This document shows, piece by piece, positions 5,072 through 55,013 of a stretch of DNA of 64,000 nucleotides. Under the pieces are notes generated by a model. It was not told the origin of the DNA. It saw only the letters and a program-made list of their open reading frames with translations, and did not search any database. Every line of letters begins with the position of its first letter. The stretch's first letter is position 1. Location: the NCBI RefSeq assembly GCF_006345805.1, contig NC_043001.1:54746001-54810000 (forward strand), read 5' to 3'. This stretch comes from Octopus sinensis. Its lineage: Eukaryota. Made by a program: the position numbers and the translations under genes.

Positions 5072-6167
5072 GTGTTGCTAGCTGAAGAGAAAGCAGTTAT
5101 TCGTTACAGTCCCACTGAAGTATCCCCACTTGATGTTGTTGAAAAGATTTGTCAACTTGGCTTCATGGCACGAGTTAAACAAGTAAACCCTGCTATAGCA
5201 TTGGAAACAAAAGATTCTGAACAAACTTTAGATTTTCTCTTTCAAAAACCATTAACTGTATCAGAAAAGCAGAATGCTGAAAGCAAGCTGCTTAGTATTT
5301 ATGGAGTGAACTCTGTTGAATTTTCAAAAGACAAAGACTTAACTGTATATTGTCAAAATTCAAAAATTAGTGGACTTCAAATTTCAGAAGCTTTAGAAGC
5401 TATTGGGATTGAGGTTAACATGAAAAAAATGAATCAAACACAAAGCTTTATATCTGAAACTATTGTTCAAATTGAAGGCATGACTTGCCAGTCATGCGTT
5501 CGCACAATTGAATCTGAACTCTCTAAATTCCCAGGTGTAGATTTTATTTCAGTATCTTTGGAAGAAAAACGTGCTATTATTCGATATGACCAGAAGGTTA
5601 CTAATCCACAGGCCCTTCGCAACAAAATTGATGACATGGGCTTTGAAGCAGCTTTAACTGAAAGTGATTCTTCTGATGTAGATTTTGATGAAATTGCCAA
5701 GCGCAATGTCCCAGCAGAAAATATGTGTATTATCAATATTAAAGGAATGTCTTGTAGTTCCTGTGTTACAATCATCGAAAACACAATATCAGAGAAAGCA
5801 GGCATCAATAAAATAACTGTGTCACTAGAGAACAATAATGCTCTAGTGAAATATAATCCTGAGAAGTTTAGTCCAGAATCAATTGCTGAAGCTATAAGTG
5901 ATATGGGGTTTGAGGCCGAGGTCTCCAAGGGAGATAATCCAGCTGCCTTTAATCTGATTGCCACTGTTGTAATAAATATTAAAGGAATGACATGCAAATC
6001 ATGTCAGAGCACAATCCAAATGAAAATCTCAGAACACTCTTCAGTGAAAAGCATTGCTGTTTCACTGAAGGATAACAACGCTGTGATTGAGTACTATCCT
6101 GATACAACATCTCCTTCTGAACTCTGCAATGCCATTGATGATATGGGTTTTGAAGCAAGTGTAGCAG
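5072..6167 (+). CDS. ATP7: ATP7 exon w1 (1096 nt): C-half of an HMA domain, a Cys-less HMA-like domain, and HMA domains GMTCQSC, GMSCSSC, GMTCKSC
   Basis: Acceptor ttccag|GTG, donor CAG|gtacgt, phase 0/1. Lies inside ORF 5027..6190. Confidence 0.95.
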
Positions 6168-15226: not shown

Positions 15227-15390
15227 GTGTACAAAACGTCCTTGTAGCATTGATGTCTCAAAAAGCTGAAGTGAAATATGACCCAGCTTACATTCTACCA
15301 TCCCAGATTGGAAATAAGATTAGTGCCCTAGGATTTGGAGCTACCCTTCTTGAATCAGAGTCTCTTGGTCAGTCTGCAGTGGAAATAATT
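15227..15390 (+). CDS. ATP7: ATP7 exon w3 (164 nt): GVQNVLVALMSQKAEVKYDP...VEII
   Basis: ttgcag|GT ... ATT|gtaagt, phase 1/0. Confidence 0.96.
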
Positions 15391-18229: not shown

Positions 18230-19298
18230 TTAGACAGGTTCTGGCTTGCAGACATGCAAAAAATAACTTATTGCTTTAATAGCCCCTCTTGAAAATGGAG
18301 GTCACATTAGATATGTCATGTATTACGAGTATAAAAAAGGCAACTTGCAAGTGTCAATGTTGGTTTTGACAAGGGGACTTTTAGATTGGAAGATACTCGC
18401 TGCTCTGAGTGCCCTGTCTCTTTTGATAATGATGTGTTGAAGGCCGCTACGGAAAGAAATCGATATGCAACTGCTGAAGAGTTAGCAAAAGAGGTTAATT
18501 CATTGTCATCAACTATCCATCACCATTTGCAAGAACTTGAAATCGTGTCTAAGCTTGGCAAGTGGGTTCCACATGAGTGAAAACAATAAAAGAAAACATG
18601 TCAATATCTACTCTGCTCTTTATTCATGTGAGAAAAAATGTCCATTTTTGAACTGCTTAGTTACTAGTGATGAAAAGTAGATGGTAAATATCAATGTCAA
18701 TGGGTCCAACCAGGAGAACAAGCAAGACCCATCCAAAACAAGGTTTTCATACTTGGAAAGTTTTGTTAAGTTTTTGGTGGGACATGTTTGGTGTAATACA
18801 CTTTGAAACCTTGCCATGAAACCAGACAACTACAGCTCAAGTGTACAGTGAACAAATTGATTGATTGAATGAAAAACTTACAGAAAAAATGGTGTTCTCT
18901 TGTCAATTAAAAGGGTATCATTTTCCATCATGACAGTGCCAGACCTCATAGTACAAGAGTCACATGTACCAAGATTGAGGAGCAAGGTTTGGAAAGGCTT
19001 CCACATCCTCCATACTCTCCTGACCATACTTCTTTGGATTATCAGTTATTCTGAAGCTTGCGAAATTTTATTGATGGAAAAAATACAATTGCTTAGAGAC
19101 ACTTGAAACAGACCTTCAAGAGTTTTTCTCTTGTATGCCAGCTGATTTCTATAGGAATGACATAAAAAAATCTTTTATGGCATTAGAATAATGTTATTGA
19201 TTCAGATGGGGAATATATAGTTGATTAAATTGGTACCTTACTTGCTTTTTTATTTCTTTAAGGCATTCTACAAAAAACATTACTTATGGGATGATTGA

Positions 19299-20328: not shown

Positions 20329-21388
20329 ATTGATTTGGCAAGAAAGTAATTTCGTTTTTCACAAATAGAGTTACAATTTTTTTTAATGACTTTTGTCAAT
20401 GTTATGATTTTTTCCTTTTGATATTTGATAGCCATTACTTTTAGCTTTCTTTAGAAGCAAATTGTATGTAATTTTGTTTACAGTTGTTCAGTGTCAATTT
20501 TAACATGGAGTGCAAAAACAAACATTTCTGCCATATTTTGCTTTTTTATTTCTGAAAAGGCAAGAAAGTTGCTGAGTTTCACAAAGAGATATGTGAAGTT
20601 TATGGTGTTGATTGCTTAACAGAATCCACATGTCAGAAATGGTTTTAAAAATTCTGTTCTGGAGATTTTTCACTTAAAGTTGACCAAAATCCTGGTTGAC
20701 CTACTGAAGTTGATGATGACTGAATCAAAGCCATAATGGAATCTAATTGTCATATAACTGTGCTACAGATTGCAGAGAGGTTAAGATGTATCACATACAA
20801 CAAATGGAAATCACTTTAAAAGTCTTGAACTCATTAAGGAACTCGATATTTGGGTTCCACATAAATTGAAAGATTCAGTTAACACAACAAATTAATATTT
20901 GTGATATGCATCTCAAACGCAATGAAATCACCCTTTTTTTTTAAATGAATCATCACTGGTGATGAAAATTGGATTATCTACAACAACATCAATCAAAAAC
21001 GATCATGGTTGAAGCATAATGAACCAACACAAACCACATTGAAAGCTGAAATAGTTGAAATTATTGGAGCTTGGTTGGGAAGTGATGTCACATCCACCAT
21101 ATAGCCCTGATCTTGCACCATCAGATTACCATTTATTTTGAAGTTTGCAAAATTCTTTGAATGGTAAAACTTTCAATAATGATGATGACCTGAAATCACA
21201 CTTGCTTCAGTTTTTGGCTGAGAAGGACCAGAAGTTCTATAAGCAAGGAATCATGAAGTTGCCAGAAAAATGGCAAAAGGTCATTGAACAAAATGGAAAA
21301 TATAGATTGAAGTTCATTTTTTATATGAAAAAAAAACGATTTTTATTTCACATCAAAAAACCAAAATTACTTTCTTTCCAACCCAATA
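20329..21388 (+). mobile_element. Internally deleted mariner transposon with both TIRs
   Basis: MECKNKHFCHILLFYF, IITGDENW and HPPYSPDLAPSDYHLF motifs; 5' ttggcaagaaagtaatt and 3' aattactttctttccaacccaata. Confidence 0.88.
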
Positions 21389-21427
21389 TTATATTGTTGT
21401 CATTCTTTCTTTTATTTTCTTATTTAG

Positions 21428-21589
21428 ATTACAGGCATGACCTGTTCTTCCTGTGTCCATCTTATAGAGTCAACTCTTCTCAAGAAGAAAGGAATAGTCT
21501 CAGCTAATGTAGCCCTGGCTACCTCAAAAGGTGTATTTGAGTTTAATAATGAAACAACTGGTGCTAGAGATATTATACAAGCCATTGAG
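21428..21589 (+). CDS. ATP7: ATP7 exon w4 (162 nt): last HMA domain [14 protein letters not shown]
   Basis: atttag|ATT ... GAG|gtaggt, phase 0/0. Confidence 0.96.
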
Positions 21590-25177: not shown

Positions 25178-26255
25178 CCCTTTCGATACCAAACCGCCCA
25201 AAGCCGCCCGAAAAAAATTTTGGTTAATGTGACCAAACCGCCCAAATTTACCTATTCATATTTAAATGAGAATATCAGAGCAAATCTCTTTAGTACATTC
25301 ATGAAAACACGTATTATATTTCGTAAACAGTTCAACTACAGTTTTGTACAACAATCAAAGTGTAATTTTAATTCCGTGAATTTTGGGAGATTTTTTTCCG
25401 AAATTTGTTCCTATTGTGTTTTCAAAATTTGTAATTCTGACAAAAAATGGATACGAATTTCATTATATCAAGCAGCGAGTCAGAATTCGAAGGATTTTCT
25501 ACTGAAGACCTTCATAAATCTAACTCTATGACTGAAAAAAAAAAGCACATGGTATTTGATAATGAATCTGATGTTTCATTTTCCGAAAGTGAAAACAGTG
25601 AATCCAATAAATCTCCGACAGCGATAAAGAAAATGAATTGGCACCTGAATGGAGTGAAAATTTAAAAACTGTTTCTTTCGGTGATTTTTCTGAAGAAACT
25701 GGACCAAGCCACAGACTTTCCCAGGAGAGTAAAGCCTTAGACTATTTCTTTTTACTTTTTCGAATGAGCCTATTTGAAATCATTACGGCGGAAACGAACT
25801 GTTACGCTAAACGTAAACAAAGCGAAAGAAAGGATACTTTGTGGTTTCCCACAACCTTAAATGAAATTAAGACTATTTTGCCATAAATATTATTATGGGT
25901 ATCAGAAAGTTACCCAGAATAACAAATTCTATCGTAAAATTTTGTTGTATACCCAATTGAATATTAGCTAATAACCCATTTTCTATAGCGATGTTTGAAC
26001 AAAATTTTAATAATTTTATATTTTGTTGAATTTACCTGTATCTACCTGCAATTAGAGTCACTTTGTGACAAAAATTATAGTATAGAATTGGTTGAGAACA
26101 TTTCATTAAATTATCTTCCAAAATTCACGTTAATATATTGATAAATAAAAAAGTTATTGTTGTTTAATGAAACCAGACTAAATTTATGATTACGTTAGAA
26201 ATTAATTGAAACACATAAGGGGTGTATTTTGGTCAGAAATATAGTAACGAAAGGG
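25178..26255 (+). mobile_element. Internally deleted piggyBac element with intact ends
   Basis: TTAA at 25174-25177 and 26256-26259; TIRs ccctttcgatac / gtaacgaaaggg (11/12 match). Frameshifted N-terminal transposase: acidic SSSESEFEGF, then LDYFFLLF...AETNCYA...WFPTTLNEIK. Confidence 0.88.
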
Positions 26256-32485: not shown

Positions 32486-32620
32486 GCTCCAATCCAACAG
32501 TTAGCAGATAAGATTGCTGGTTATTTTGTTCCAATGGTTGTGTTTGTCTCTGTGCTCACTCTTATCATTTGGATTATCATTGGCTATCATGATATTAAGT
32601 TGATTGACAAAAGTTTTAAG
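32486..32620 (+). CDS. ATP7: ATP7 exon w11 (135 nt): [18 protein letters not shown]5
   Basis: tttcag|GCT ... AAG|gtataa, phase 0/0. Confidence 0.96.
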
Positions 32621-34005
32621 GTATAATACTTTATATTTTTTTTTAAACTTGAATTTTTTTTTTTTACAAAAGTCTTAATAACCAAACTATTTGTTATAAT
32701 TAGATATTTCTCTTCTTATAAATGATATTATTTTTTCTTTTTTATGTATTTATGTATACTGCTGTTCTTGTTTGTTATTCATCCATTTTATTTCATCACC
32801 TTTATTTACATATACATTGTTGAGGAGACTGGTTTGACTACTCAATGTCTTTCTTCTTATAAGCAAGGGTTCATGGACATTTTATAATCAAGAATTAGGG
32901 GATATTAATGTTTAGGAAAACTAATGTGGGAAAAGTAGTGTATCTTGTGTAATGGTTTTGATGATTGCATCTGCATTTGATCTTGTGTCTTTGACATCAC
33001 AGTCACATTGCCTTTTACTGTAATATGGTTGTTTTTTTTTATAGTCCTCAAATAAGTTTGGTAAGCATGCCTTTCTGAGCCATATTTACAACTGATGTGA
33101 GCTGAAAGAGTGAAAGAGAAGAGAGAGAGAGAAAAATTGGTATTTAGTATCAAATTACCTACTCACTGGTATAGTTTAGTGAACCAAGATCCAACCTCCA
33201 ACCAAGATCAGAAGTGGAACTTATATTTTAACTCATTTTTCTCATGCTTTTATGAGTTGGTTGTCTCTGGGTTTTGTGATATTTTTGAGTAAGCCAAAAA
33301 TATCACAAAAGCACAATATATATATATATATATATATATACATACACACATATATAGGGTCTGCTTAAATCAAACCAAGCCAGCCAGTATACTGAGACCA
33401 TTCTATGATACCATTTAAAAGTATGTCTTCATTGAGCCTGTTTAGAATTGGATCTTGGATAGTTATTGACAGAAAATTCCAGGATAGGTAGGGTAATTGC
33501 CATCATTAGCATTACTATCATTACCTTTCTTTTCACTAGCATTATCATCATTTTAATTATTGTTGTTACCATTGTTAGTTCTGTGTTTTCTTTCCACCAT
33601 AAAAACAGTTATGATGTGGAACTTACATAAGACTACATTTGAAAACCAATGACCTGTGATATTTAACCCTTTAGCACTCAGATTACAAAGTGAATAACTG
33701 CTTGTTTATTCACTTTGTTTTAAATTTATCATTCATTATCTCATAGCTTTAAGCTTTTGATGATGTTATTGTGTATTTTCTATTTTTAGAATGACATTAT
33801 AGGGTACATATGAGATATCAGGTCTGTCTGGTCTGGATATAAAACAGGTATACTATTTGGGCTGGATATGACCGGTTTAAAATCTAAAGGGTTAATAGAT
33901 GTAAATCTAAGTATTGATTTATTGTATTCCTTCATTTGTTTGATTCATTGATGTTATGTAAACAAATCTAATTGATGTTACCATACACTGTTTGTTGCTT
34001 CACAG

Positions 34006-34197
34006 GAAGATGGTCCTTTGACAAAACATGAATTGATATTCCAATATGCTTTCCAGTATGCAATTACTGTTTTAAGTATTGCATGCCCCTGTGCTCTGGG
34101 TTTGGCCACACCCACTGCTGTAATGGTCGGTACAGGGGTTGGTGCCACTAATGGCATTCTCATCAAAGGCGGTGAACCTCTGGAACTGACACATAAG
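34006..34197 (+). CDS. ATP7: ATP7 exon w12A (192 nt): canonical TM6 exon ...[40 protein letters not shown]
   Basis: tcacag|GAA ... AAG|gtaaga, phase 0/0; CPC motif. Confidence 0.97.
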
Positions 34198-35061
34198 GTA
34201 AGATCTAGGGAACAGTCAGCAAGGTTTACAGAAAAGTGTTCTTTGTTAATGCCTCTCTTGCGAGATGTTCTTTGTGTTGTTTTTATATTGACAAGTTTCT
34301 TTGCTTTGTTGACACTGAATTTTTTCACTTGCAGATACATCTACTTTTCTTTCAAGGTACAAACATTGTCTTTGTATGTGTATCTATGTATACATATAGG
34401 TCCATAAACTACATATATCATAGGTCATAGATATCAGATGGTCAACACATTTTTACTATATGCGAATATTTGGACAACTTTAGTGATGTGATAGCCTTTT
34501 AAAATTATGCTATCGTTTGGTTCAAAATTCTTATTTAGATCAGGATGGGGATTCTGCATACTCACAATCTGAAGTTGTATGGCAACAATGGAAAACAACA
34601 GGTTCTTTTGCTACTTGTTGCATTGATTTTACTTGAAGGAGGATTTAACATTAGTATCACAGTATCAAAAGATTTGTCTGTTCATTGCTTCCTACAACAA
34701 TGAAATATAACTCTGATATCAAATTTATCTTGAAGTAATTAAAGAAGTGTGAATGTTACAGATATTGTAGCCCCATTTGTATACCATAGCTGTTATCAGA
34801 ATATAACTGTTGGATATCTGCTGCTGCTAATAATGATGTACATAAACAAGTCTTTTGTACAGCTTCTGGATATCTGTGTAAGACTATTTGTAGAGTTTTT
34901 GATGAACTAATATCTATCTCTTGGTTGTTTACAGGTGGATTAAACTGAAATACCAACAATTATCTGGTCTTTGATACTTGCTAGTACCTCTTCTCAGGCA
35001 AATATATTGCATTAAGACTGAAAAAAATATTAAACATGTATGTTTCTTAATTCATCTTCAG

Positions 35062-35253
35062 GCTTATGGTACTTGGCATTATCTTCGTGTGGTATTTACA
35101 GCTGCTGTCCAATACTCACTCACAGTTTTAACAGTGGCTTGTCCATGTGGTCTTGGTCTTGCCACACCCACAGCCATTGTCGTAAGTCTTGGGGTAGGCA
35201 GCAGTATTGGCCTTCTTATCAAAGGTGGGATTCCTTTAGAAAATATATCAAAG
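35062..35253 (+). CDS. ATP7: ATP7 alternative exon w12B (192 nt): diverged duplicate TM6 exon ...[40 protein letters not shown]
   Basis: cttcag|GCT ... AAG|gtaaga. Same length and phase as w12A, open frame, CPC kept, 34/64 aa identical. Usage in mRNA is inferred. Confidence 0.85.
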
Positions 35254-38200
35254 GTAAGATGGTCAGTACAGCATAACCAAGCGCTGAGTTCATGATATAC
35301 CTCTGGTAATGGGCTTACACCATTTTCTTTTGCTATGGTGATTAAAGTTGCCTACCCTTTGCTCTCCCCCTAATCTCCTTTTGAACAAACTGGAGTCCTT
35401 AATCCCATCAGCTACATTTTATTTTTTAAAGCTTTCTAGTATTCCAACACCTTTTAAGAGAGAAAAAAAAACTGTTTCTCATTTACCCCACTGGTCAGAT
35501 TTGGGTTTAGGAATTCTTCTTTAGCTTATTTATCATTTTTTTTTCATTCAAAGCTTTTATAAAATGTTTGTATATTGAAGGTGAAAGTTACTGATGTTTC
35601 TGTCTGTGATATTTTTGTCACGATGTTATATTATATAATTGATAATTAATTTTAACTTGATGATTTTTACCATAAAATCATATTAAAAAAACATTTTTTT
35701 GAAAAAATTAAATAACTCACAATCAGTGTTGTATTATTAATAATAATAAAATAACCCCAATATTGTACTAAGATAGAAAGATGATGTTAATAAAGTGCCT
35801 TTATTTTTTTCATGGGATAGTGGTAACAAAATTGGTAGAGTGACAGGTAATATACCTTGTGTTTTGGGGTTCTGAGTTCAGATCTTGCCAAAGTCAAGAA
35901 CAAAGTACCAGTCAAGTATTGCGACTGATAAAAAAAAATCCATTGGTCCTTCCCTACATAAATTTCTGCTCTTGTATCTATATAGGAAATCATAAATGTG
36001 TCATTTAAGAGTAACAGTAGGGAAAAACAGTTGAGTGCCTTACAGATCTAGGCTTATTTATGTTCTTAGTTCAAATTAAACGAAGTTTAACTTTGCATTT
36101 CAGCTCTTTGGGACTCAGTAAAATAAATACCAGTCATTAACTGGTGGCTGATTCAGTTGACTACCCTACACAGATTTGGAACTTTGTGCTAAATGTAAAC
36201 TTGTTAGATTGAATTCTTGGACTGCAGCAGTACAAGTGTTATAATAAGCAAAGAAATCAATATTATTAACTATGACAGCTTGTTAAGGTTGACTTTGCAT
36301 TTCATCCTTTGTGTTGCTGTGGTTTGACCTTAATGAAGCAGACCTATGATCAAAGCATTATAGTCATGACTGTCCCCTCTCTTTAAACCTATTTAGGACT
36401 GCTTTACCTAATAAATGTGGTTCTTATTTAAGACAGTAAGATGTGATCTGAGAAGATTTGGTTGCTATTTCTAACAGATTGACCAACCACATTGATGCTC
36501 CTTCATTACAAAAAAAAAAAATCCTTTTGCATGCTGATGATTACAAAGTGAAATTTTTAACCATTTTGCCATTCATTCATTCATTCACACACACGTGTGT
36601 GTGTGAGAAATATTGGTATTTACATGGCCCTGTCAAGTGACCTGGTATGATCACACAGTTCCTTGAACAAGTGTCTTTTATCATGGGTCAGGTTTCACTC
36701 AAGCTTTGTTCTTGACATTCAACATAAAAGCACATCAGGTTGTTTGAAATGGTCGTTAAATAATAGCTTTAATCTGTTGCCCAGTTTAATGCCACCAGTT
36801 GGCTCTTTATTGAGTTCAGCAAAGTTCTCTCTATTACAAGCATTTGAATCACATTTCTGGTCTGAGAAATGATCATATGATTGCTGTTTCATCATTTCTT
36901 TATTTCCCCTTCTCCTTTGTCACTCGTGGATGCACTGCATAAAGAGATGAATGAATGCACTGCTGGAATATGCAATAAGAAGGGACAATGGTTGAAGTAA
37001 GAACGTTATGTATGTAATCAGTAAGGTGTTCTGTTAGAGAGAGAAAAATTAAAGAAAATGCTGTCTCTTCCTTGTCTGTTAAGTCATATTTATTTTTAAA
37101 GAAAAGTGGTTGGGATGTAAGACAGAATCAATTGGGTGGGATTTGAACTCAGAGCATAAAAGAAGATAACTAAATTTTGCATTACAAACTCTTTTGTACA
37201 TTATTTGAGAAGAATACTAAATATTGTATGTTGTATTGAAATTTATGAAATTTTATCAGTTGTAACAGTAATATGTTTTGTAATAAAAATTCTAAGGGTT
37301 TTTAATTAAACTGCTATTTTCTAATTATATTATTGAATTTGTGTGGGTTACATTAATGCATTGTTACATTGCTCATATTAGTAGATGTGGCAATAATATT
37401 AGTAGGTATGTAAGTTACTAGAATTGTGGATTATGTTTGTGGGTAGGATAGTGTTACTTTGCTCAATTAATAGCTATTTTAACATATTGATACATTGATA
37501 ATATTAGTACATATATGAGGGTCACATTGTTAGATATGTGGGTCATATTAGATATGTAGGTCATATAAGTGTATGTATGTGTATATACATACATATATAT
37601 ATAGTAATAATTTTATATTTGGGTATACACCTTGTAGTATGCTATTTAAAGCCTGTTCACAGTATTTGGTTACCTGATATCAACAACTGTATGCAAGTAT
37701 ATGCCACTGGATTTACTTCAGGAATTCCAGTACCCATAGAGTTTATAAAAATATGATAAAGAAAATGGAATTCACAAGACTCTTTATTATTCACTACAAT
37801 CATTTCAACCCATTGTGCACCAGTGCCTATGATACATGCAACTGTTTGTACAACATCTCAAGCCATGAGGTACCATTGCATGATGGGTCAAAATGATCAT
37901 AGTGAATAATAGTCTCATGAATTCCATTTTCTTTCTCTCATATTTATACCCCAACCTATATATATATTCTGAGATCCCCTTCAGTCACGACACAGACCAT
38001 GGGATTGCACCTAGAAAGTTACCCTCTGAGGTACAAGTCTGGGCAAGGTTGCTTATGGAAGACCAGCAGCCACCCACGCATACCAGCCTCCCCTCTCCAT
38101 GCCACCGATGTTATCCAAGGGAAAGGCAATGACCTATACAGCTTGGCACCAGTGACGTCGCAGCTCATTTATTAACGTCCAAGTGGCTGAGCACTCCACA

Positions 38201-38594
38201 GACACGTGTACCCTTAACGTAGTTCTCGGGGAAATTCAGCATGACACAGAGTGTGACAAGGTTAGCCCCTTTGAAATACAGGTACAACAGAAACAGGAAG
38301 AGAGAGTGAGAGAAAGTTGTGGTGAAAGAGTACAGCAGGGTTCACCACAACCCCTTGCCAGAGCCTCGTGGAGCTTTAGGTGTTTTCACTCAATAAACAC
38401 TCACAATGCCCGGTCTGGGAATCGAAACCACAATCCTGCAACCGCTGGGCCATTTATATATATAAAGTGGGTCACATTAATAATTATATAGATCCTTCCC
38501 TTGTAAATATGTATGTTACACTTGTAGATATATAAACCATTCTAGTTTAACATGTTCCACTTATTTAAACCATGTTTATTCTTATTTTTGATAG

Positions 38595-38777
38595 GTGAAG
38601 AACATTGTGTTTGACAAAACTGGCACCATCACTCATGGAATACCCCGTGTGGCAAGAATCTGTACTTTTGTTGAGAGTCATGTGTGTTCATTTGTGAAGC
38701 TACTTGCTATTGCAGGAACTGCAGAGACCAGCAGTGAACACCCTATTGCTGCAGCAATTGTGAAATATGCTAAGCAG
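38595..38777 (+). CDS. ATP7: ATP7 exon w13 (183 nt): phosphorylation site DKTGT and SEHP
   Basis: tgatag|GTG ... CAG|gtaatt, phase 0/0. Confidence 0.98.
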
Positions 38778-54778: not shown

Positions 54779-55013
54779 ATTCCAGAAACCCACAAAGAAC
54801 GAACTCCTCACGCAAGAATACTTTCGCAAACATTGTGAAAGAGAAGTTGAAAATATCTCCGTCCACCGTGGTATTGATGAATGTCCTCCAAGTCCGAAAG
54901 GCAGTCGACAGGGCAGTATCTTATCACGGCTGAGTGGCAAGTCAAAGAAGCCACCGACAGCTGAATCTAACAACTTGCTTCAGATGGACCCCACAGTTGA
55001 AATTGAAGCTTAG
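54779..55013 (+). CDS. ATP7: ATP7 last coding exon (235 nt): LFQKPT...ISVHRGID...NNLLQMDPTVEIEA*
   Basis: Long pyrimidine tract, then ctcaag|A; phase 2. The tail resembles the vertebrate ATP7A tail (KPT, SVHxGID, dileucine). TAG at 55011-55013. Confidence 0.88.

Follow-up and report, generated by a model that had tools for sequence, protein, structure and literature searches.

Tandem copies of the CPC-helix exon in octopus ATP7: a candidate mutually exclusive pair retained in octopuses and a distant cephalopod

Introduction

ATP7 pumps are copper-transporting P-type ATPases that supply copper to secreted cuproenzymes and export excess copper, with the CPC helix of transmembrane segment 6 (TM6) forming the heart of the transport site. 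In humans, this helix is a hotspot of Menkes and Wilson disease mutations. Tandem-duplicated substitution exons are known from other genes: they are enriched in ion transporters and membrane proteins, are ancient and tissue-specific, and are present in one P-type ATPase family, PMCA (PMC9741552). In known cases of mutually exclusive tandem exons, such as exon 5a/5b of voltage-gated sodium-channel alpha genes, calcium-channel exons and those of PMCA, neighbouring homologous exons match in length and phase, and each codes for a functional segment that spans the membrane (PMC9741552, PMC8373072, PMC12772994). These features are shared by two TM6 exons, here called A and B, in the ATP7 gene of Octopus sinensis. 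They lie in a stretch of 64,000 nucleotides (nt) from contig NC_043001.1 (assembly GCF_006345805.1, positions 54,746,001 to 54,810,000, forward strand), referred to below as the window.

Exon A is the canonical TM6 exon, and exon B is a divergent second copy that is missing from the RefSeq models. A first-pass annotation of this DNA had proposed that the two exons are used in a mutually exclusive manner. The comparisons described below suggest that B is probably a protein-coding alternative to A, of low abundance or restricted use, which replaces A in the transcript. Judged from genomic sequence, cephalopods carrying B probably make a second version of the pump.

Structure of the exon pair

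Both exons are open throughout, are in phase 0/0 and measure 192 nt each (Table 1). The acceptors read ...ttcacag/G for exon A and ...catcttcag/G for exon B (the slash marks the exon boundary), each behind a pyrimidine-rich tract, and the donors read AAG/gtaagatc and AAG/gtaagatg, respectively. The layout described in the first-pass annotation, with two phase-0/0 exons spaced 864 nt apart, intact splice sites and no stop or frameshift, is therefore all present in the sequence. A and B align without gaps, with 34 of 64 residues and 120 of 192 bases identical (62.5 % in DNA; BLASTP E = 1e-23), which is far above chance similarity. Different codons are used at 18 of the 34 identical residues, confirming that many synonymous differences accompany the gap-free alignment, as had been noted earlier. 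A tblastn search of the window with both peptides and the whole protein found neither a third copy of this exon nor any other duplicated ATP7 exon, again in agreement with the earlier description.

Either A or B alone fits in frame between positions 32620 and 38595. Because 192 is 3 x 64, joint inclusion of both exons, or skipping of both, is also frame-preserving. The consequences for the protein would be very different. In the topology of P-type ATPases, each copy corresponds to one membrane pass plus the strand toward the phosphorylation site. A protein with both copies would gain a ninth helix and place its catalytic domains on the wrong side of the membrane, and a protein with neither would lose the CPC helix. 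Both outcomes would ruin membrane topology, and mutually exclusive use is therefore the best explanation for the pair. The argument for one copy per pump that had been made at first reading is sound in this respect, as it draws on established P-type ATPase topology. For the same reason, selection on the protein sequence of B makes sense only if B replaces A.

Table 1. Features of the ATP7 locus in the window and junction strings for the possible splice products in O. sinensis (E11 and E13, constitutive exons upstream and downstream of the pair; slashes mark exon junctions).
Feature	Positions	Strand	Description
ATP7 (copper-transporting P1B-ATPase) gene body	5072-55013	+	20 exons, 1404 codons to stop at 55013
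Upstream constitutive exon (E11)	32486-32620	+	TM5; APIQQLADK...IDKSFK; phase 0 at 3' end
Exon A, canonical TM6 exon	34006-34197	+	192 nt; lumenal loop, CPC helix, stalk to phosphorylation domain
A-B intron	34198-35061	+	864 nt, U2-type (gtaaga...cag)
Perfectly conserved intronic block	34321-34367	+	47 nt; identical in window and contig L001
Upstream flank of exon B	34862-35061	+	92 % conserved between two octopods, gap-free
Exon B, divergent, unannotated alternative TM6 exon	35062-35253	+	192 nt, 64 aa
Downstream flank of exon B	35254-35453	+	92 % conserved; 35306-35405 at 95-100 %
Downstream constitutive exon (E13)	38595-38777	+	Phosphorylation site, SEHPI; phase 0 at 5' end
Junction E11/B			GATTGACAAAAGTTTTAAG/GCTTATGGTACTTGGCATT
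Junction B/E13			CCTTTAGAAAATATATCAAAG/GTGAAGAACATTGTGTTTGAC
Junction E11/A			...AAAGTTTTAAG/GAAGATGGTCCTTTGAC
Junction A/E13			GGAACTGACACATAAG/GTGAAGAACATTGTG
Junction A/B			GGAACTGACACATAAG/GCTTATGGTACTTGG
Junction E11/E13			AAAGTTTTAAG/GTGAAGAACATTG

Conservation of exon B in a second octopod

A genomic read-through open reading frame (ORF) from public run assemblies, P0052, led to a 2635-nt contig of a second octopod (L001). This contig aligns with positions 33758-36401 of the window at ~80 % identity and carries both exons in the same A-intron-B order, with all four splice sites retained. Exon B is also found, without A, on contig L002. Between the window and L001, 14.3 % of aligned intron columns are mismatched and many indels are present. 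Exon B differs at just 5 of 192 positions against ~27 expected for a neutral stretch of this length, and all five changes are synonymous (the nonsynonymous divergence, dN, is 0). At the intronic mismatch rate of 0.143, five or fewer changes in B have a probability of 4e-8, and the probability that five random substitutions in B are all synonymous is ~0.001. Exon A has 7 changes in 192 nt, which are likewise all synonymous.

The two exons within the window are far more distant from each other. Their synonymous divergence (dS) is ~1.0-1.35 and their dN 0.30-0.41, and the duplication is therefore many times older than the split between the two species compared here.

Conservation of exon B in a distant cephalopod

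Exon B was searched exhaustively against 1.84 billion cluster representatives, and a B profile was used in addition; only two B-type entries were recovered, P0052 and P0268 (78 % identity), both of them genomic. The remaining matches of the exon-B search had at most 66 % identity, and those that were read were A-type. P0268 lies on contig L003, in which a 192-nt exon at positions 462-653 is bounded by ctacag/ and /gtaaga, and the introns of this contig can no longer be aligned with those of the window. This contig recurs at 99.5-99.8 % identity in at least 10 runs, from which nine contigs with exon B were obtained (L003, L007-L014). Across these nine cuttlefish-like contigs, no site varies in the exon and 5-6 sites vary in 1077 nt of intron, numbers too few for a test. 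Contigs with exon A (L004-L006) do not overlap with those containing exon B.

Octopus B and L003 B share 43 of 64 residues, with a dN of 0.256 (0.174 in the core), a dS of ~1.5 and a dN/dS of ~0.11-0.16. The changes fall on codon positions 1, 2 and 3 in a ratio of 20/8/36 (p ~1e-4), or 15/3/31 in the core. For exon A, the octopus sequence and its cuttlefish-type counterpart on L004 share 59 of 64 residues (dN = 0.065). At nine positions, the two B exons agree with each other and differ from the two A exons, which also agree; no position favours an alternative grouping. Four-point sums come to 0.32 for (A,A)(B,B) versus 0.79 and 0.82 for the other two arrangements. These results place a single duplication before the octopus and L003 lineages split, and the pattern of changes shows that B has been under coding constraint ever since. 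The earlier claim of an old duplication with purifying selection is thus borne out for both copies, each in two further species, and for B at both depths, by a dN of zero between octopods and by the low dN/dS against the distant cephalopod.

The accession series of the underlying runs gives some indication of the host of these contigs. Runs SRR9969973/4 supplied B contigs and the nearby SRR9970012 supplied full-length transcripts of the cuttlefish type; similarly, ERR14857108 supplied one B contig and ERR14857104 a contig with cuttlefish-type exon A. If L003 is the cuttlefish-type decapodiform, the duplication would predate the octopus-decapodiform split, which published clocks place on the order of 250-300 million years ago. 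Among the matches from other molluscs, no B-type exon was found, though A-type genomic exons of molluscs up to vertebrates were abundant. As B-type exons were seen only in cephalopods, their distribution does not favour a general link with haemocyanin, and the suggestion in the first-pass annotation that one isoform could serve bulk copper loading in a haemocyanin-using animal finds no support.

Exon B as a TM6 segment

In several respects, the sequence of B resembles that of a competent TM6. The CPC motif of TM6 (M4 in P-type nomenclature) is present in both exons, and 32 of the 64 positions, including IKGG.PLE, are invariant in all four exons compared (A and B from octopus and from the distant cephalopod). 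B retains the conserved P1B residues between TM6 and the phosphorylation domain (P-domain) that it has in common with A. In our own reading, the glutamate of PLE would align with SERCA Glu340 (compare PMC7733806). In a hidden Markov model scan of the 170-residue TM5-TM6-P-domain segment, to which NCBIfam whole-protein cut-offs are not applicable, TIGR01525 scored 168 bits with B and 182 with A; the scores were 138 versus 156 for TIGR01511 (Cu) and 44 versus 51 for PF00122. B is therefore more diverged from the family consensus than A.

Compared with the canonical TM6 exon of ATP7A/ATP7B (Xenopus ATP7B in 7SI3/7SI6/7SI7; human ATP7B in 7XUK), exon A is nearly identical, and its ...HK/gt boundary is common to molluscs through vertebrates. 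Exon B aligns end to end with the TM5-TM6-P-domain region of ATP7B in 7SI3 and 7XUK, residue for residue apart from one 1-residue gap in the lumenal loop. B is set apart in both lineages by T in place of S and G in place of A around CPC (the G standing where the canonical segment has A or S after the motif), by IVV instead of VMV, an L replacing T in the VGTG turn and GLL instead of GIL, and by changes at the C-terminal end of the exon. Octopus B also reads GGIPLE in place of GGEPLE; as cuttlefish-type A has S at this position, the site does not cleanly separate A from B.

The first-pass annotation expected two pumps that differ in both the ion-binding helix and the lumenal loop. The first part holds, as the CPC helix differs, along with the cytosolic stalk to the P-domain. 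The second part fares less well: the lumenal loop of B differs from that of A, but it is not conserved between the two B exons. Because the substitutions in B adjoin the CPC site and the link between M4 and the P-domain, and because the other copper-site motifs, YN (TM7) and MxxSS (TM8), are encoded in exons common to both versions, the B form would most likely be a Cu(I) pump with altered transport kinetics or altered coupling of copper binding to phosphorylation, rather than one with a different metal selectivity.

Conserved intron flanks

Regulated alternative exons are usually marked by strongly conserved intron flanks. Over 200 nt on either side, the flanks of B are 92 % conserved between the two octopods, compared with 82-83 % for those of A (Fisher p = 1.5e-4) and 67-70 % deeper in the introns, which fits a regulated exon. 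Conservation within the A-B intron is poor over the first ~45 nt and amounts to 67 % in the middle.

The 47-nt block that is identical in both octopods reads tttttcacttgcag/ATACATCTACTTTTCTTTCAAG/gtacaaacat and contains a CU-rich (pyrimidine-rich) tract. Positions 34335-34356 within it form a 22-nt unit resembling a micro-exon, cag/ATACATCTACTTTTCTTTCAAG/gt, with both splice signals. Spliced in after exon A, this unit would shift the frame. The block could act as a splicing-regulatory element, bind a splicing repressor, or supply a decoy or a poison micro-exon. In comparisons of folding with shuffled sequences, z was -2.0 for the region around B and -0.3 for the conserved A-B block; with two alignable species, there was no power for covariation.

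Two other structures were observed in the surrounding introns. TA/CA-rich segments at 33298-33367 (before A) and 37553-37626 (after B) bracket the pair and are complementary to each other over up to 58 nt at 74-87 %; this complementarity is low-complexity and probably fortuitous. In the intron between B and the DKTGT exon, a nested inverted repeat at 37744-37948, with arms of 41 and 44 nt that are 83 % and 77 % complementary, looks like a small hairpin-forming (MITE-like) insertion.

Transcript evidence and alternative explanations

Several observations weigh against the use of B as an alternative to A. All eight annotated octopus isoforms (O. bimaculoides X1-X4, O. sinensis X1-X2 and two of O. 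vulgaris) carry A and none carries B, and the same is true of the annotated ATP7 of Argonauta hians. The transcript products that cover TM6 in two decapodiform clusters, well over 60 contigs together, are all of the A type. Among 499 collected proteins, 445 are A-type and four B-type, the latter all genomic read-through ORFs, and exact look-ups of three hypothetical full-length B isoforms gave no match. In the splicing signals, no means of enforcing exclusivity by steric hindrance, U2/U12 incompatibility or frameshift with decay was found: the 864-nt intron is too long for a steric block between A and B; there is no U2/U12 incompatibility, as both donors are gtaaga and both acceptors cag; and a length of 192 nt, being a multiple of three, shifts no frame and causes no such decay. 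For competing RNA pairing (docking/selector sites), where two alignable species give no power to detect covariation, a search across 32621-38594 yielded nothing convincing, only TA-rich low-complexity arms and weak matches of 20-25 nt. In addition, the B protein sequence has evolved ~4 times faster than that of A, and L003, while probably a cuttlefish-type decapodiform, has only the proximity of run accessions as the basis for this assignment.

The reach of the transcript searches should be considered here. The collection searched holds no Octopus ATP7 transcripts, its clusters merge isoforms, and de novo assemblies retain the major isoform. No listed protein match was longer than ~1.75 times its query (297 aa at a query length of 170 aa), so short queries cannot reach full-length proteins. 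A search with the E11+B+E13 junction peptide found only the genomic read-through ORF, and one with the full-length B isoform found A only. A further entry, P0498, had been considered as an intron-retaining transcript and was rejected, as it proved to be a normally spliced transcript of the A type that contains a frameshift. Overall, the missing B transcripts are weak negative evidence, although they do show that in the decapodiform material sampled, B is no major isoform.

The same gap in annotation and assembled transcripts, together with the greater distance of B from the family consensus, is what would be expected of a decaying pseudo-exon, a dead and unused duplicate. This is extremely unlikely. 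The duplication is old, with an A-B dS of ~1, yet B has no stop and no indel, keeps its splice sites, shows 5 rather than ~27 differences and no amino acid change between octopods, and has an orthologue in a distant cephalopod. An intact B is thus found in two further species, and a dead duplicate is refuted by the close and deep comparisons as far as sequence evidence reaches. The probability that B is an assembly or haplotype artefact, a possibility raised in the first-pass annotation and one for which no evidence was found, is negligible: A and B are just 62.5 % identical in DNA, the A-intron-B arrangement recurs on the independent and ~80 % identical contig L001 of another species, and B alone is found on L002 as well as on nine contigs that stem from a third species and at least 10 sequencing runs. 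Independent assemblies therefore refute it.

Two further explanations accept the conservation of B and assign it another cause. B could act as an in-frame inactivating exon, either included along with A or with both exons optional, such that an inactive and wrongly oriented nine-helix protein lowers pump output. A transcript with both exons preserves the frame and would not be removed by nonsense-mediated decay, no mechanism enforcing exclusivity was found, and the flanks of B are conserved as in a regulated exon. A disrupting insert, however, need not retain 32 invariant P1B positions, nor would it need a dN/dS of ~0.1-0.16 or a length of exactly 192 nt across a distance at which introns no longer align, and this explanation is clearly improbable. 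Alternatively, the conservation might reflect a role of the DNA or RNA without translation, as an intronic enhancer, a splicing-regulatory structure for A or part of another transcript. Conservation does reach 200 nt into both flanks of B, the separate block at 34321-34367 is perfectly conserved, and the region around B folds slightly better than shuffled sequences (z = -2.0). Non-coding constraint, on the other hand, gives no such pattern as the one seen here, where all five changes between close species are synonymous, deep divergence tracks codon position (20/8/36; core 15/3/31), and frame, length and splice sites are retained in a species with unalignable introns; such a role is very unlikely to account for B.

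Mutually exclusive, protein-coding use of B remains the best account of the pair and is probable. A more far-reaching version holds that coleoids have used two TM6/stalk versions of a single ATP7 since before the octopus-decapodiform split, with B as a kinetically distinct pump for a specific cell type or condition, for example the haemocyanin-producing branchial gland or copper stress. The two isoforms would then form a natural pair for studying the coupling of copper binding to phosphorylation through the CPC helix. This version is speculative and on the unlikely side.

The ATP7 gene in the window

The gene model was obtained by chaining splice sites and reading frames, with the first exon or exons lying upstream of the window. 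It is residue-identical to O. sinensis isoforms X1/X2 at the positions that separate O. sinensis, O. vulgaris and O. bimaculoides, and 95-100 % identical to annotated octopus 'copper-transporting ATPase 1'. In a full-length search, the proteins of that name from Octopus bimaculoides (95 %) and Argonauta hians (86 %) were found, as were two transcript clusters at ~70 %, one of which matches the cuttlefish Acanthosepion pharaonis. The ORF contains the P-type catalytic motifs LITGES (TGE), FDKTGT, SEHPI and GDGVND, and five GM(T/S)CxSC (GMxCxSC) metal-binding sites of the N-terminal HMA type.

Variation was also seen among the metal-binding domains. At the start of the large exon, positions 5072-5470 span the length of one such domain between two intact GMTCxSC sites and have no CxxC cysteines or Pfam HMA match; this second metal-binding domain seems degenerate in octopus. 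In cuttlefish-type ATP7, another metal-binding domain reads GMKNKSC, having lost its first cysteine. The RefSeq octopus isoforms (P0121, P0241, P0244, P0247, P0243, P0246) vary solely in the choice of N-terminal first exon, upstream of the window, and not in the membrane core; in some, the first metal-binding domain is missing and the protein begins with MARVKQ.... Open intronic segments at 18335-19051 and 20949-21504 (both in the intron between the exons at 15390 and 21428) and at 25441-25883 resemble, by eye, remnants of mariner-like or piggyBac-like transposases. A Pfam scan of these fragments gave no significant match, and the transposon reading remains an impression.

Internal repeats in ATP7-like entries from other organisms were also encountered. 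P0059, on an ENA contig of 748,706 nt from an unrelated organism, has three tandem copies of the first part of an ATP7-like DKTGT exon (IVFDKTG[TS]LTHGVP[RQ]VSRIALFVSVTACLTQITS x3) and may be another tandem exon duplication in the ATP7 family, in another exon and another organism. P0184 (Artemia franciscana 'isoform X2') repeats the region from the A-domain to TM6 exactly, and P0001 (Strongylus vulgaris) repeats TM5; the identity of these repeats suggests assembly or annotation artefacts rather than alternative exons.

Proposed model and comparison with known systems

Taken together, these observations show that the TM6 exon was duplicated in tandem in an ancestor shared by octopuses and the cephalopod that bears L003, probably a cuttlefish-like decapodiform. 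Both copies have since been retained as 192-nt phase-0 exons with intact U2 splice sites, and a functional mRNA would have to contain exactly one of them. One gene could thereby produce two Cu(I) pumps that differ only in 64 residues, which make up the CPC helix, the short loop before it on the lumenal side (TM5-TM6) and the stalk leading from it to the phosphorylation domain. Form A would be the default, and B a minor form restricted to certain tissues, stages or conditions.

If this is correct, the pair would offer a natural variant set for how M4 and the stalk determine affinity, turnover and E1/E2 balance. It would also provide a handle on copper partitioning in an animal with one ATP7 gene and copper-based blood. 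For annotation, the RefSeq models of three octopus genomes lack this conserved coding exon.

No paper or annotation that describes a pair of this kind, in ATP7 or any P1B-ATPase, was found, in line with the first-pass annotation, which knew of none; RefSeq does not contain B. Several variants per ATP7 gene are already known, from the octopus RefSeq isoforms X1-X4 with their N-terminal first exons and from exon skipping in human ATP7A and ATP7B. In contrast to the A/B pair, the annotated octopus isoforms vary at the N-terminus alone and leave the transmembrane core unaltered. The closer parallel is with tandem substitution exons in other membrane proteins, which are likewise ancient, with purifying selection on both copies, and of which unannotated copies are often found in distant species. 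Unlike those systems, the A/B pair is known here from genomic sequence rather than from mRNA usage; it also differs in residing in a P1B copper pump, where the exon that is swapped encodes the catalytic ion-binding CPC helix itself.

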